Below are positions 41,976 to 50,014 of a stretch of DNA of 64,000 nucleotides, in pieces. This DNA is from Salpingoeca rosetta (Eukaryota; Protista; Choanoflagellata). The notes under the pieces are model-generated. The model ran no database searches. It saw only the letters and a list, made by a program, of their open reading frames with translations, and was not told the origin of the DNA. The DNA lies in assembly GCA_033442325.1 (NCBI GenBank), contig JAWQFM010000026.1:1003093-1067092 (forward strand), given 5' to 3'. The position numbers were made by a program, and so were the translations under genes. Each line of letters opens with the position of its first letter. Within the stretch, counting starts at the first letter, position 1.

Positions 41976-42010
41976 GTGCCTTGTCAAGTTTGTGGATGGA
42001 GTTGCACTTC

Positions 42011-42119
<109 letters not shown>

Positions 42120-42440
42120 ATTTCGCAAGTTCTTGCTTCTTTCCCGCCTAATGTTCTTGCTTCTTTCCCGCCTAACACTGGCTACCGCCTTGCTTGCTTG
42201 CTCTGCCTTGCTTGCTTGCTCTCTTGCTTGCTTGCTGTGCACTTTCCGTTGCCTTGTATCTGTTCATTGACGTTGAAGCTGTTTCGCCGCTCCCTTTCGT
42301 TCCTCCACACAGTGCGCCTTGCGTGTCGGTGTGTGCTTGTGTCTGTGTGTGTCTGTGTGTCCGCCTTTGTCCGCCTGTGCCACCAACACAAATACACTGA
42401 ATTCAGTGTAGAAGCGAAGATGCACAAACCAAGCCAGTGA

Positions 42441-42512
<72 letters not shown>

Positions 42513-42678
42513 ATCATGAAACGAAACGGGGCCAGGTCACGGAGGGAAGACCGACAGCCATTGTGCGCACAAGAACAAACGCATCTGTTGATGACAAGTC
42601 GAACAACAACAACCACAACAACAACAACAGCAACAACAACAACTTAAACAACAACAAGAAGAACAACAACAACAACAA

Positions 42679-42714
<36 letters not shown>

Positions 42715-42906
42715 CACAGAGCAGTGGAACACAAGCGAGCGTCAAGGAAGGAAACCACAACTGGCGTGCGTGTAACAGAACAGTGGGTGATGGACGAAAT
42801 GTAACAACTGCACCACGGTGACAGGACTGGAGGAGAGAATAGAAGCCACAAAATGGACGGTGGTGAAAGAGAAGAAAGGGCGTGCCACGAGGCAAGTGGC
42901 CAAGAG

Positions 42907-44290
42907 CTAATACGCTGAGCTTGCGTCCACATAACACTTCATTGCCTCTCGCACCAGCTTGACTGCGTGGCCCACTCTCACACCCGCACCTTTCAACATT
43001 TGCATCGTGAGCAAATCCTCATGAACAGACACGACTAGCACCTCCAGGCAGTCGATGCCGTGCTCCACCAGGGCGGACTCGACGTGCGGCAGCAGCGAGT
43101 GGCGGTTGAGCCATTGAACGAGATCTGGCTCAAATGGCAATGAGGAGGACGAGGAGGAAGATGGGGTGGCGGGTGGCGGTGGAGCAGGAGTTGTCGCGGT
43201 GGTGGACGAGAGCGACAAGGAGGACTGCTGGATATGTGGGTGAAAGGGGTGGGTGAAACAGAGTGTGAACGCCAAGCTGCCAGGGATGCGCCTGCAGGCA
43301 TGGACGCGCGCACACACACACACATACACATACACACACACACACAAAAATACCATACCTGCGTGGATCGACGTGCTGTGCCTGCTTCCTGCGTTGTTTG
43401 TTCGTCGCTTCTGGCAGAGACGGCAACCTGGCGCACCTTCTCTGCAATGTCGCGCAGCTGTGACGTGCGGTCCACAACAGCATTCAAAGCAACCACCGCG
43501 TCAATGTCAAACAGTGACAACACAGTCTCACGTACACTCTTGTGCTGCTGTGGCGGTGGCAAGTGTAGCACCTGCGTGAAATACTGGTCCAGCGCTACGG
43601 CTGTCTCCTTGCTTACAACATCTGGCAACGTCATCGCCAGCCGCTTCAGGCGGTCAAACGAGTCGTACTCGCTCACCTCGGCCCTGCTCATGCTGCTGCT
43701 ATCGTTCACATTGTGCCACGCGCTGCCAACAATCACGGGCACGACACGGCGAAGGCGGATCTTGGCGTGTTGCTGCTCCTCGTCTTCTTCGTGCGCCCGC
43801 TGGAACTCGTGCAGCGCCAGCATCGTCATCCACTCCAGCAGCACGTTGTCGCAGTAGTCGCTGTGCTGCAGCTGCCTCATCTGCATGATGGTGGCAGCAG
43901 ACGCGATGGGGCACGCCACCAGACTCAGCCCAATCGCCGTCATGAACGACAACTTGAAGTTGAGGCCCGTCTCCAGGTTGTTGGCGTCCAGGAACGCCAC
44001 CAGGTTGCGCTGCTCCAAGCGCGGATGCAGCGCCATCACCAGCCCACTGCTGGCGCGTTGCCTGTTGTGGTTGCGGGAGAGGGGGGGGGGGGGGGTTGAA
44101 AAAGGTCGTGATGAGATAACGGTAAACTGCATGCATTAGTTGTGGCGAGTTGGTGGAGGTGACAGACACGTACTGGCACAAACACACACACACACACACA
44201 CGCACACACGCACACGCACACACACGCACACGCACACGCTTGCACACGCTCACACGCACACACTTGCACACGCACACACGCACACACGCA

Positions 44291-44383
<93 letters not shown>

Positions 44384-47300
44384 CTCACCTGTAGCTGATG
44401 AAGACGTCGTACTTGTCCTGCAGGCCGAGTACGGGCAAGAGAGGGCCATACTTGGCGACAAGGTCATCGGGCGGCAGCAGCTGCTCGTCCACCCACATGT
44501 CCTGCTTGCTCTTGTGGTGGTGCAGCACATCCTCGAAGAACAGCAGCGTCTTGTCGTCGTACGGCAACAACAGGCTGCTCTTCAGCTCGGGATAGCGCTC
44601 TCTGGCGGCCTCGCTAATCATCTTGTGCAGCATATGCAGCATGGCGCGTGGCTGCGCACTCGTGATCTTCATCTTGATGCCGCCAACAGCCGGCACAAGC
44701 TGCAACTCAAGCTTGGTCGACTCCATGAAGCAGATGGCGTGGGTGCGACTCAGCTTGGGCTGCTGCGATGCGCCGTGCTGTGCATGCGTCATCACATGCG
44801 CTAACACCACCGTAAACAGGCCCTCTGGCAGGAAAGACGCATGCTGTGCGTCTTCAACACGCACGCTCGCCTCTGTCTTGAACTGCTTCAGGCGAAAGGT
44901 GACATACGCCGTCTTCTCCTCAAACCCAAGATATGGATTGACCTGCTGTGCTGCTGTCGTGCTCAGAGTGACAGATTCCATCGTGCTGCTGCTGTGGCGG
45001 ATCGTCATCGGCAGGATGGCTGGGACCAGGTATTGCTGCTGCTGGTGCTGCTGGCGTTGGTGTGCGTCATTGCCCTTGCTCACACCATCGTTGTCACCGT
45101 GGCCGGAGTTGGTGCGGGCGAGCGCTCTGCGGCTGTCCACCAGCTTGGGTGATGCATACTCAATGCACAGCCCATATTGCATCATGAGGCGCAGGAACGG
45201 GTCAACCAAGTTGCTGTCCACGTCTCTCCACAACACCTCCAGCAGACGACGGTGCAGGATGCCGCGGTCGACAAGGTCGTCCCACACGCTGGCGCCAAGT
45301 GCCCGCACCTCCGGCCCCTGCACATCGTCGTCGTGCAGGCCAAACGTGCGGATAACGCGCGTCATCGTGTCCACCGCCCACTGCGGGCTCAGGATCACAT
45401 AGGCCTCCATGCCTGGCACACTGTCGTAGTAGAGCACCATGGAGTACAAGTGCAGGAACTGGAGGCAGGCTCTCGTCTCCTCACGTGTGCGCAGCCCACA
45501 GGTGCGCGCAATCTGGACCACCTCGTCAAACGTGAGCAGCGGCCGTTTCTCGTCGCGGGCAATGGCGTTGAGCTTGTCGTAGAGGTGGAGGTAGGGTACA
45601 GCGACCTCCTGGCTCACGTACTCCTGCGCTAAGGCTGTGGAGGAGATGGTCTGGCGCAGGTCCTGGATCATGGGGTCGCCGATGGACTTGGTGTTGTCGA
45701 CGGGCCAGAACCACAGCTTGTGCTTGCTGTTGTACACAACAGAAGCGAAGGCCGGGTTGTGGCGCAGGCGGCTGTGGATGTCACGCGAGATCTGCTCATG
45801 TTGCTTCCGCTGACTGACCACATCAGCGAAGGTGCCGACGATGAGGACGGGCGCGCCTTTTGCATGGAGGTGGAGAGAAGACAACCAGTGCTCCATAAAC
45901 TCCCACGCCTCTGTCCGCTTGCTCTCGTCTTGGTGCAGCAGGTCCTCCATCGAGAACACCAGCAGGTACACCGCGTACCTGTTGGGGGGATGTTGGGAGT
46001 AAAAGGGTGGGGATGAGAAGGGTAAGGGTTTGGGGGGGGTAGCACTCACACACACGTAGCACNNNNNNNNNNNNNNNNNNNNNNNNNNNNNNNNNNNNNN
46101 NNNNNNNNNNNNNNNNNNNNNNNNNNNNNNNNNNNNNNNNNNNNNNNNNNNNNNNNNNNNNNACACACACACACATACACACACACACACGCACGCACAC
46201 ACACACATACACAGCGACTCACTCTGTGAGGAAGAAAGGGTGGAAGATGTAGAAGGTGGACTGACCGCCCAGGTCAAAGATCTTGAAGGAGACCTGCATC
46301 TTGCCTTCGCCAATTGTCGCATCAAAGTCCATGTCCTTGATTGCCTTCTCCACCTCCTCCTTCGAAACGGATGGTGTGGTCACGGCAACGACGTCAGCAT
46401 TGTCGTCACCAACGTCGGCGTGGCTGGAAGCTGGGTGCTGCTCCTTTGCTGCAGGCGTTGCTTTGGAGGCATCACGACCTGCAGCAGGTGCAGGCACGGC
46501 TGCGGTGGACGCCTTGTCGGATGATGGAGCGGAAGTTGTGGTTGTGCGACGGTCCTTCTTGCACTGCTTCTTGTCATCCGTCCTGGCCTGCTTCTTGGCC
46601 TGCTTCTTGGCCTCCTCGTGCTGTTGCTCGGTAACACGGGTGGCGTGCTGCGCCCGTGCCTTTGCTGACGCGCGCTTCAGCTCCTCGTCCACGCCGGCCT
46701 CGCGTGCCATCGCCGTGCCAACGAGACTGCGGATGAACTCGGACGTGCTCTGGTCGCTCTCCTGCACGAGATGTGGAAGGGTGGGTGTTTGTGAGTGTTG
46801 GTGAACAATGACATAAGGTGGTGATTGATCGAATGATGGTGGAAGCAGGTGTTGGTACAAGGTGGATGCACATATCACACACACACACATACACACACAC
46901 ACCGACAGACAACACACACGCACACACACCGACAGACGACACACACACACACACACACACAATCACGTGCACATACACGCAACTAAACGTACCTTCCAGT
47001 CGCACACTTCCATGGTGTGGACGGTGACTCTCATGTCATCGGTGGTGCGCCGAGCGTGAAGTGCTGCTGCTTGTGAACGGCTTACCCCTGAGCGAGTTCA
47101 CAAGCGTCGTCTTGCCNNNNNNNNNNNNNNNNNNNNNNNNNNNNNNNNNNNNNNNNNNNNNNNNNNNNNNNNNNNNNNNNNNNNNNNNNNNNNNNNNNNN
47201 NNNNNNNNNNNNNNNNNNNNNNNNNNNNNNNNNNNNNNNNNNNNNNNNNNNNNNNNNNNNNNNNNNNNNNNNNNNNNNNNNNNNNNNNNNNNNNNNNNNN

Positions 47301-49699
47301 NNNNNNNNTAAGGCGGATGCGGCAGTTGCCTTTTTACAAGGTGAAAAAAAGTCTGAAGTGGTACAGCAGTGCAAACGACAATGGGTTTCCTGTGCACGTA
47401 CATGCTCTGTATCTGGTGTGTCTGAAGCTGTCATGTCCGCCTGCTGCTGCTCTTGCTTTGGTTGTTGCTGTTGTTGCTGTGGTTGTTGCTGGGGTTTGCT
47501 GTCTGGGTCGAGCCCTGGGATACTGGTGATGGCGTGGAAATTGCGTTTCTGCGCCACCATGAATGGTGTTCCACCCTGTGGATGTTGGATGCGGACAGAG
47601 TGAGCGAGCACAGAAGCAGTGCACGTTGAAAAGAGGCGCGGTTGTGCAATAAAGGCGTCGCACCCACGGCACATGCGCGCGTACCCTGATGTTCTTGACG
47701 GCAGTGTCTGCGCCCTTCTTCAGGAGCAGCTCCACGACGGCGGGCTGGTTGTGCCTGCAGGCAACGTGCAGCGGCGTGTCGCCCTGTGTTTGGGTGGGGG
47801 GGGCAGGAAGGGGCATGGCACGTGTGGTGAGGATCTGTTGAAAACGAACACACGGCCGGTGCAACCATGAGCGAGCGCCGTTCACATACAAGCACAACAC
47901 ACACATGATGAACATACCCGCTTGTCCTGTTGGTTGATGTCTGCATTGTCCTGCTCCATGAGGGAGGTGACAACGGAAGCGTCGCCATCCCTGCAGGCGG
48001 CAAACAGTTGCTCATGCTGCCGCTTCTTCTCCTCGCGTGCTTCGTTAAAGGCGGCCTTGCCCTCATCGTCGTACGCCCTGTGGTAACACGCGACATTGGA
48101 CGCAAGCATCACGCAGCAAGTGTGCGTGAGGTGAAGGGTCGAGAGAAGGCAGGAAGCAAGCGACTAGAGTGGAAGCACGCGTTGACTGACCAATCTGTGT
48201 CGAGTTTTCGGTCGACGGGCAGCGCGGCACCAAAGGCGCGGGCGGTGGCGGTGGAGTTCTTGTTGATCCTAAACGAGGACACGTGGTGGTAGCGTGTGGT
48301 TGGGAACAGGCAGCAAGTGCGGTGCGTGCGTCAGGAGGGTTGGTGGTTAGGGTTGTGGAGAAATGCAAGCAAGCAGAGAGGAACACACACAGTGTGGCGT
48401 GCACTCAAAAGAGTGGCGATTGGTCACACAAATCCACAACAGGACACAGGCGTTCATGAGGCAGGCGCAACGCAATCGACGTACTCAAGCCGAGACAGCG
48501 TGCGGTTTTGGTCCAGTGCGGCACCCAGGGCCGCACCGCCAACCGGGGTGATGGAGTTGTTATACAAGCTGCAAGTGGCAAGAAATGCATGTTGGAAGAG
48601 CAGGGGAACGGGTGGGCAAGCAACACGTGTCAGTGTCATGGATAAAAGTGGGTTGCAGATGGATCACGTGCACGCGTACTCGCTCGCACATCAGGTCCTA
48701 CGACTTTTAAGGCACAATGGCGGAAGCAAAGGGGGCAAATGCAAATTGCACAGGATGTGGCAGCACTTGTGGCACATATGAAGGATGGAAGCATTTGTTG
48801 GTCAAACAAGCAAGTCGCACAGACATCGTGGGTGGCTTGCGGTGCCTCCATCTGCACACGGGTATTGCGGAAGAAGCGCCTAAAGACACACATTGCAAAG
48901 AGGAGCTTCCACTCACTCGAGTGCTGTGAGGGTCGTGTTGTGCTTCAGCATCTCCGCCAACGCCACAGCGCCCTCAGGACCGATGCGGTTGCCTCCCAGG
49001 CTGTCAAGATGGTATGATGCCACACAGGGCGATGATGCCACATGGATGAGGAAGAGTGAGTGAGTGCGTGATGATGCTCGCTGTGGGTGGCAACACAGTC
49101 GTTGAACCCCACCCCATCAACCACACATGTGCGCATGATAAGGTGGAACGGCAGTGACGCAGCATACATGTGCATGTGTGCGTGTACACACTCACCTGAG
49201 TTCTTCGAGGGTCGTGTTGTGCTTCAGCATCTCCGCCAACGCCGCGCCCTCATCGCCGATGGAATTCCATCGCAGGCTGTGCAGACACACAAGAAACGCA
49301 GGGAGCGAAGGTGAACACACGTCCAAACATGCGCCAGCAGGAGAGGAAAGGGGTGCAACATGCAACACCGCCATCCCAATCAACCATGCATATCACACGA
49401 TGCAGATTCATCATCACCACGCACCTGAGTGCTTTGAGGCAGGTGTTGTCCTTGAGCGCCTCGGCCACCGCACGCGCCCCAATGGCGCCGAGGCCAGCAT
49501 TGAAGAAGCTGCAATTCCAAATGGTGTGTGTCATGAAATGAGCAAGAAGAATGAGGATCAAGAGAGCAAAAACGTGAGGGTGCCAGTCACACCCTGCCAC
49601 AAACACACACAGTGTGTCCAGGCGGTGCGAGGGGACGCGCACACGTAAACACCCAACAGCAAGCCACACCAAGCTCATTGCAACACAAGGACAAGCCAA

Positions 49700-49792
<93 letters not shown>

Positions 49793-50014
49793 CAGCACAA
49801 GCACAACCACAAGAAGTGGCCTTGGTGTCCAACACATGCATGCATGTTCCAACACGTCGTTTTGGTTGCTTTTCCACTCAGGCACTCACTGTATTCTATC
49901 CCCACACGTGTTGTTGGCGATGGCCCTGATCTTGTCCTTCACCCCATCCTTCAGCTTCGTCTGCGCCAGCAACGCCTCCACCTCCTCCCTCGCTCTCTTC
50001 TCTCCGCCGGACAT
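42907..50014 (-). CDS. Roco protein: RI/NLRC3-type LRRs, ankyrin repeats, Roc GTPase, COR, TIR, SAM-like domain
   Basis: ATG at 50014 ([16 protein letters not shown]). LRR exons such as [55 protein letters not shown]. Roc motifs [28 protein letters not shown]|EYAVYLLVF and [73 protein letters not shown]-like [33 protein letters not shown]. Stop at 42907-42909. Confidence 0.9.
46063..46162. other. Assembly gap (inside a Roco intron)
   Basis: N run. Confidence 1.
47117..47308. other. Assembly gap hiding the start of the Roc P-loop
   Basis: N run immediately before GKTT on the minus strand. Confidence 1.
49702..49790. repeat. (AG)n microsatellite in Roco intron 1
   Basis: Direct reading. Confidence 0.95.

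Follow-up and report, generated by a model that had tools for sequence, protein, structure and literature searches.

A divergent TIR domain with a putative catalytic glutamate in an LRR-ankyrin-Roc-COR-TIR-SAM protein of the choanoflagellate Salpingoeca rosetta

TIR-domain enzymes that make cyclic ADP-ribose (cADPR) signals from nicotinamide adenine dinucleotide (NAD+) connect bacterial, plant and animal immunity, and in SARM1, plant TNL receptors and bacterial TIRs the active site forms across two TIR domains. The gene described here, PTSG_08722, lies on the minus strand at 42907-50014 of a 64,000 nt stretch of the Salpingoeca rosetta genome (GenBank assembly GCA_033442325.1, contig JAWQFM010000026.1, positions 1,003,093 to 1,067,092; below, the window). 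Its product (P0084 = XP_004990516.1 = UniProt F2UKH9, 1426 aa) has the domain order LRR-ANK-Roc-COR-TIR-SAM and is a cytosolic protein, one of at least 25 paralogs in this species. The TIR domain of PTSG_08722 is probably an NAD+-consuming ADP-ribosyl cyclase/glycohydrolase, with E1162 as the catalytic residue and canonical cADPR as the main product, a reading that is well supported because of homology and mostly because of the published assay of a sister paralog, F2UB80.

F2UB80 (P0103, PTSG_12359) is an ANK-Roc-COR-TIR-SAM protein encoded in the same genome. In the preprint that reports the assay (bioRxiv 10.64898/2026.04.20.719644), row 33 of Table S4 gives F2UB80_1 as an S. rosetta protein with a length of 1352, a TIR at 1034-1255 and catalytic residue 1118, scored as active (yes, 1 hour) and as producing cADPR (yes), and S. 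rosetta is named among the cADPR producers. Catalytic residues were located in that study by TM-align to ThsB E85, which gave E1118 for F2UB80, and point mutation of the catalytic Glu is stated to have abolished cADPR production in all active TIRs. The domain abbreviations of the Figure 3 legend include COR, LRR and Roc, and the preprint was the only paper found that joins S. rosetta with Roc, COR and TIR; a literature search on ROCO proteins with a TIR domain and NADase returned no paper. F2UKH9 and its close paralogs were not found in the portions of the preprint tables searched, which does not amount to their absence from the study.

A catalytic TIR with this Glu is essentially covered already by the work on the sister paralog. 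Points that may still be of use are that the TIR of PTSG_08722 was overlooked by Pfam-based annotation, that it belongs to a second TIR subclade apart from the assayed F2UB80, and that its DNVLLEW signature has Asn in the place of Trp.

Two further groups of described proteins bear on the locus. Separate choanoflagellate SARM1 homologues with a conserved Glu were reported by Richter et al. 2018 (PMC6040629), who noted TIR in combination with Ank, Arm or SH2, and not with Roc-COR. The ROCO proteins (LRRK2, DAPK1 and the Dictyostelium Roco family) share with PTSG_08722 the order of LRR/ANK repeats followed by a Roc GTPase and a COR-A/COR-B tandem, and differ from it in having a kinase or death domain as their output where PTSG_08722 has TIR-SAM.

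The alphaC glutamate and the TIR fold

When all PDB sequences were searched with the profile of the family alignment (A1, 23 sequences), the SARM1 TIR came first (E 1.8e-6), followed by Roq1 (4.6e-6), L6 (1.7e-5), AtTIR, AbTir and TIR-1. In the pairing with SARM1, vfisyR is set against VFISYR, DnvLLeWm against DWVHKEIV, and a ten-residue segment of the family against FIDVEKLEAG. The family Glu pairs with SARM1 residue 642 as counted on the full-length chain (profile 1-79 aligned to 564-639), the posterior support of the hidden Markov model (HMM) alignment being moderate at the Glu end. The family further shares with SARM1 the FISYR motif, the FLD Asp (D594 in SARM1) and the Gly of the BB-loop (G601). 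The SARM1 TIR and its E642Q mutant (...DWVHKQIV...) are both printed in Table S4 (bioRxiv 10.64898/2026.04.20.719644), which fixes the Glu of DWVHKEIV as E642, and the SARM1 strings given in a preliminary description of the window match the TIR printed there.

By sequence alignment, E1162 of PTSG_08722 takes the position of SARM1 E642 and, through the column that it shares with E1118 of F2UB80, that of ThsB E85. The codon placed by the preliminary description at 43833-43835 was exact (Glu of NVLLEW, minus strand 43835-43833), and its proposal that the putative NADase Glu is kept appears sound, given the pairing with E642 in the profile-to-PDB alignment and the near-invariance of the residue in the family. 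In A1 the Trp directly after the Glu is invariant, and conservation reaches 90% or more at the Glu, the Asp of the motif and both Leu. The pattern D[NYD][VL][LA][LMV]EW was present in 83 of the 106 fetched proteins, most of the others being fragments or sequences without a match to the strict pattern.

The fourth residue before the Glu is Trp in AbTir and in plant TIRs, where it forms a conserved WxxxE context that is not present in the TIR of PTSG_08722. Most members of the family have Asn at this site and a few have Tyr. As read from the alignment, DNVLLEW is the signature of the family, its Asn standing where SARM1, AbTir and plant TIRs carry the Trp. The tested paralog F2UB80 also has Asn at this position and is scored as active in the preprint, so the Trp is not essential in the DNVLLEW family.

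An AlphaFold2 (AF2) model of the TIR (m0225e75ff9c9), built from alignment A1, had a predicted local distance difference test (pLDDT) score of 87 and a predicted template modelling (pTM) score of 0.87. Strands at model residues 15-19, 44-46, 68-71, 131-133 and 211-213, with helices in between, give a flavodoxin-like fold, to which four extra helices (148-206) are added between betaD and betaE, followed by a long alphaE from residue 220. The Glu is residue 98 of the model; it lies near the start of helix 94-111 (alphaC), no more than one and a half turns in, and after a short helix at 77-87, and the helix layout around it matches that of SARM1. The language-model neighbours of the TIR were TIR_2 clusters at 0.94. 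With Foldseek against the PDB, plant TIRs came on top (RPS4, RUN1, SNC1, RPP1, L6 and Roq1, probability 1.00), and SARM1 appeared from rank 26. Alignment of model residues 12-242 with VIA-align gave Z 10-14.3 to 50 TIR entries, which head the list; values for the most relevant structures, with the root-mean-square deviation (rmsd), were as follows.

RPV1/RUN1 (plant): Z 14.3-13.4, 157-165 residues, rmsd 3.1-3.7 Å, identity 15-16%
Human SARM1 TIR: Z 12.5, 140/140 residues, rmsd 2.5-2.8 Å, identity 21-22%
Caenorhabditis elegans TIR-1: Z 12.4, 142 residues, rmsd 2.6 Å, identity 17%
AbTir: Z 11.8, 133 residues, rmsd 2.2 Å, identity 19%

The TIRs of SPARTA and Cat1 followed with Z 11.4-11.5. The structural alignment to SARM1 and plant TIRs that had been proposed as a check came out in favour of the domain assignment, in that the whole SARM1 TIR superposes on the model (140/140, Z 12.5) and plant TIRs reach Z 14.3. 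Judged from the model, the domain of PTSG_08722 has, beyond reasonable doubt, a TIR fold that is divergent but complete. The fold ends at about 43419 of the window (betaE and alphaE, model residues to about 236), so that the interval 43730-44412, boxed as the TIR in the preliminary description, is too short.

How far the domain is SARM1-like depends on what is compared. The human SARM1 TIR, an NAD+ hydrolase with E642, is the best solved-structure match by profile, with FISYR, FxD, the BB-loop Gly and the alphaC Glu aligned, and both proteins contain a SAM-type domain. SARM1, however, is ordered ARM-SAM-SAM-TIR, and PTSG_08722 is LRR-ANK-Roc-COR-TIR-SAM with a single C-terminal SAM; the TIR of PTSG_08722 is about 85 residues larger through the expansion of the alphaD region (the four helices between betaD and betaE), and W638 is replaced by Asn. 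The margin of SARM1 over plant TIRs is small by sequence (1.8e-6 versus 4.6e-6 for Roq1) and negative by fold (Z 12.5 versus 14.3). The label SARM1-like given to the domain earlier therefore stood in one respect, as SARM1 is the best solved structure by sequence over betaA-alphaC, and failed in the ranking by fold, the i-4 residue, the alphaD region and the architecture; the likeness seems to hold only for the N-terminal half of the TIR (betaA-alphaC) and at the level of sequence. Orthology of PTSG_08722 to SARM1 was rejected, as the Pfam matches of P0084 include neither an ARM domain nor a SAM pair ahead of the TIR.

Plant TNL TIRs (RUN1, RPV1, RPP1, RPS4, L6 and Roq1) have the top structural scores (Z 13-14.3 over 157-166 residues), and in these receptors, as in PTSG_08722, a TIR with an alphaC Glu, an NADase in plants, is joined to a nucleotide-switch domain and LRRs. 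They differ in an identity of only 14-16%, in the N-terminal position of the plant TIR and in the switch, which is NB-ARC and not Roc-COR. As to bacterial ThsB and other defence TIRs, weak PADLOC matches to ThsB1 (E 2e-3) were obtained over betaA-alphaA; the sequence match covers only about 45 residues, and PTSG_08722 is a eukaryotic multi-domain protein with no operon partner. A bacterial ThsB-like origin was considered, and the weak N-terminal PADLOC matches were uninformative.

The paralog family, the assayed sister and competing explanations

The 234-aa TIR exon, used as query in full HMMER, gave 82 relatives, with S. rosetta proteins best, and a word search with the TIR region of paralog P0001, by which the annotated protein P0084 was retrieved, gave at least 25 S. 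rosetta paralogs of 1172-2282 aa. These LRR/ANK-Roc-COR-TIR(-SAM) paralogs (P0001, P0002, P0083-P0106; at least 25) are spread over many S. rosetta contigs. The DNVLLEW-type TIR is also present in the choanoflagellates Hartaetosiga balthica and Salpingoeca infusionum and in uncharacterised metagenome and EukProt entries. Among 57 more distant relatives, domain matches at E 1e-3 or better were to TIR_2 in 35, COR-A in 17, Roc in 15 and SAM_2 in 6, and ARM was found in none, which indicates that the DNVLLEW-type TIR is typically a Roc-COR output domain.

In a maximum-likelihood tree of 29 TIR regions, the S. rosetta copies formed two subclades. Subclade A has 9 rows and includes PTSG_08722 with its twin P0086 (99.2% identity in the TIR), and subclade B has 14 rows with support 100/100 and includes the assayed F2UB80. 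The TIRs of F2UB80 and PTSG_08722 are 65% identical and 77% similar over 256 aa (BLASTP), with CDNVLLEWM identical; E1118 of F2UB80 is the Glu of CDNVLLEWM as counted along the sequence, and it shares a BLASTP column with E1162. Unlike F2UB80, PTSG_08722 has no precomputed Pfam TIR annotation and falls in the other TIR subclade. The earlier proposal of an enzymatic TIR, possibly with a cADPR signal, is supported by the alignment of the Glu, its conservation and the active, 65%-identical F2UB80.

In the mechanism proposed for PTSG_08722, E1162 in DNVLLEW (alphaC) would act in catalysis as E642 does in SARM1, and the TIR would turn NAD+ mainly into canonical cADPR, as measured for F2UB80. Because the active site spans two TIRs, activity would need TIR-TIR assembly, presumably aided by the C-terminal SAM-like domain and by Roc-COR dimerisation, and the LRR/ANK-Roc-COR part may gate the TIR through its GTP state.

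Several results weigh against an enzymatic TIR in PTSG_08722. Pfam TIR_2 (PF13676) scored 23.9 bits over P0084 residues 1081-1199 against a gathering cut-off of 28, for which reason the precomputed Pfam list of P0084 is without PF13676; on the TIR domain alone the score was 24.3 bits (E 4.6e-5), significant yet under the cut-off, and on the TIR exon without betaA 14.1 bits (E 0.066). The TIR exon alone gave 0 matches to the PDB with phmmer even at E 10, since the single exon sequence without betaA is too divergent, and the family profile was required. SARM1 W638, four residues before the Glu, corresponds to Asn (N1158) in PTSG_08722. The assayed F2UB80 is in the sister subclade B and PTSG_08722 in A, and the two are not nearest relatives. 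In the available portion of Table S4 (bioRxiv 10.64898/2026.04.20.719644), NAD+ depletion, 2'cADPR and 3'cADPR are all left blank for F2UB80, so that its activity in Escherichia coli may be modest; some Glu-bearing TIRs, such as TLR2, are moreover given as inactive in the same source.

The score under the Pfam cut-off, the missing i-4 Trp, the position of F2UB80 outside subclade A and the reported inactivity of some Glu-bearing TIRs would also suit a TIR that acts only as a scaffold, signalling through TIR-TIR or TIR-partner contacts like most animal TLR and adaptor TIRs, with a structural Glu and with catalysis lost or never used in the subclade. We consider such a scaffold unlikely, as even distant relatives keep the Glu, and with it the complete DNVLLEW motif, almost without exception, FISYR, the Asp and the BB-loop Gly are all kept, and cADPR is made by F2UB80, whose motif, Asn included, is identical.

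Product specificity varies among close TIR relatives, and with a 35% sequence difference from F2UB80 and a separate subclade, the TIR of PTSG_08722 might be an active enzyme of another chemistry: it might chiefly deplete NAD+, as a SARM1-style death switch, make a signal of the 2'/3'-cADPR type, or yield some other nucleotide. The chance of this is small, because the active-site motifs are identical between subclades A and B and nothing in the analysis points to another product. A non-functional copy, that is, a decaying or mis-assembled paralog whose RNA signal would come from the 99%-identical twin PTSG_13152, is very improbable: two assembly gaps in the gene, an annotated Roc without a P-loop, RNA contigs that deviate from the window near the stop codon and reads that can cross-map from P0086, given its 99.2% identical TIR, speak for it, but outside the gaps no exon interrupts the reading frame, the introns are canonical GT..AG, 1511 of the 1975 aligned reads of run X23 are at least 99% alike, and the N gap accounts for the absent P-loop.

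With the enzymatic reading of PTSG_08722 retained, a wider role of the family can tentatively be sketched, although we regard it as doubtful: a Roc-COR switch fed by an LRR/ANK sensor would gate the oligomerisation, via SAM, of a cADPR-making TIR, the at least 25 paralogs would form an NLR-analogous repertoire in which Roc-COR replaces NB-ARC/NACHT, and subclade A might differ from B in product or trigger. If true, an NLR-analogous receptor repertoire would exist in the closest unicellular relatives of animals. The TIR-Roc-COR fusion, which a choanoflagellate holds in at least 25 copies, is relevant to the form that innate-immune-like signalling had before animals.

The Glu was substituted in two S. 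rosetta-type relatives, P0104 (Gln, DNVLLQW) and P0003 (Lys, DDVLLKW twice). P0104 (PTSG_12997, 2282 aa), encoded outside the window, carries a PARP catalytic domain (PF00644) in addition to LRR-Roc-COR and the TIR with DNVLLQW; it thus unites two NAD+-using domains, of which one is probably inactivated. In P0003 (211 aa) a degenerate TIR core with DDVLLKW occurs twice, and the protein has the look of a fragment that was duplicated or of a pseudogene model.

Gene structure, transcripts and the flanking domains

The window is eukaryotic in character: its G+C content is about 55%, its many short introns consist largely of (CA)n or (GA)n, and it contains four N runs. In tblastn of P0084 on the window, exons were collinear with the protein from 50014 down to 42910, with 96.6-100% identity. 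Features of the gene, in the order of transcription, are listed below (positions of the window).

42907-50014, minus strand: whole gene PTSG_08722 (P0084), from tblastn of P0084 and Pfam domains
47117-47308, no strand: assembly gap (N run, from the N-run listing) in the gene, which removes the start of the Roc P-loop
44389-46004, minus strand: exon for the C-terminal part of Roc, COR-A (Pfam E 2e-18) and COR-B, the last codons (44412-44389) being TIR betaA YDVFISY(R); 5' splice site AG/GTGAGC
44062-44388, minus strand: GT..AG intron of 327 nt, mostly (CA)n/(TG)n microsatellite, which ends in ...ccacaacag and splits the TIR after betaA; from the sequence and RNA depth 0 over 44107-44374
43359-44061, minus strand: TIR exon, P0084 residues 1086-1320, alphaA-alphaE including the expanded alphaD region; from the AF2 model and VIA-align
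43833-43835, minus strand: codon GAG of E1162, the putative catalytic Glu in DNVLLEW at the start of helix alphaC; from coordinate mapping and alignment
43228-43358, minus strand: GT..AG intron between the TIR exon and the SAM exon; from the sequence and an RNA contig (X3 record 10) that joins 43227 to 43359
42910-43227, minus strand: last exon, with a Ser/Pro/Thr-rich linker and the C-terminal SAM-like five-helix domain (Pfam SAM_2 sub-threshold, AF2); stop codon TAG at 42907-42909

The peptide YDVFISYR...VVPVIVG quoted in the preliminary description is coded on the minus strand and interrupted by the one (CA)n intron at 44062-44388; it was exact once the exons ending at 44389 and starting at 44061 were joined. 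The position of this intron matches a protein junction mapped from a paralog. The spliced translation is 100% identical to residues 557-1426 of P0084 over 870 aa, and the splice model is hence the annotated one.

Expression was followed on 42700-44700 with two stranded RNA-seq runs from 2026 and two older contig sets; read placement and intron joints covered the sequence outside the long microsatellites and homopolymer-codon runs. The RNA depth was roughly 60-360 over the exons of PTSG_08722, 0 in the intron at 44107-44374 and about 0 at 43236-43302. In nearly all read pairs the first mate was on the plus strand, as expected of minus-strand RNA in a dUTP-type library. No RNA variant was listed at the Glu codon (43833-43835), and minor RNA variants (10-50%) elsewhere in the region fit cross-mapping from paralogs.

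A rare joint at 43458-43571, within the TIR exon, skips 114 nt (38 codons, in frame, GT..AG on the minus strand); 4 reads of run X24 show it, where the depth is about 100-250. It may represent a minor cryptic intron that takes out part of the alphaD/betaE region.

In Pfam searches of P0084, LRR_6, ankyrin repeats, Roc (35 bits, residues 528-606), COR-A (64 bits) and a weak COR-B were identified, with the Roc GTPase directly before COR, as in ROCO proteins. The UniRef name of PTSG_08722 is only 'COR domain-containing protein', and most paralogs are labelled 'non-specific serine/threonine protein kinase', yet their Pfam lists hold no kinase domain. The annotated PTSG_08722 has no GxxxxGK[ST], whereas paralogs carry GQGRAGKT, and its residues from about 265 to 346 form an implausible stretch. 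The P-loop is missing from the annotation because of the N gap at 47117-47308, directly after which the window reads GKTTLVNSL; the absence looks like an annotation artefact and not a loss of the GTPase. A second assembly gap within the gene lies at 46063-46162.

The C-terminal domain is a probable SAM domain. On the last exon SAM_2 scored 19.2 bits against a cut-off of 20.5 (E 1.3e-3), and in a profile search of the PDB the four best matches and two of the next five were SAM domains, with weak E-values of 0.008-0.6. The AF2 model of the domain is a five-helix bundle with a pLDDT of 77, and its low-rmsd Foldseek matches were SAM domains (CASKIN2, Ste11 and EphB2, rmsd 2.1-2.9), which were not significant (E above 0.9).

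At 42899-42941, around the stop codon, the RNA contigs (X1, X3) differed from the window by seven substitutions and one inserted C, and exact-match reads were scarce, with a depth of 0-5 at several sites. The mismatch would reflect either errors in the reference at the 3'-end of the SAM exon or contigs derived from a paralog.

Very long microsatellites and homopolymer-codon runs, of the types (CA)n, (CTG/CAG)n and poly-N or poly-S-coding, were found at 41976-42780, at 44140-44390 and in other introns and intergenic DNA.

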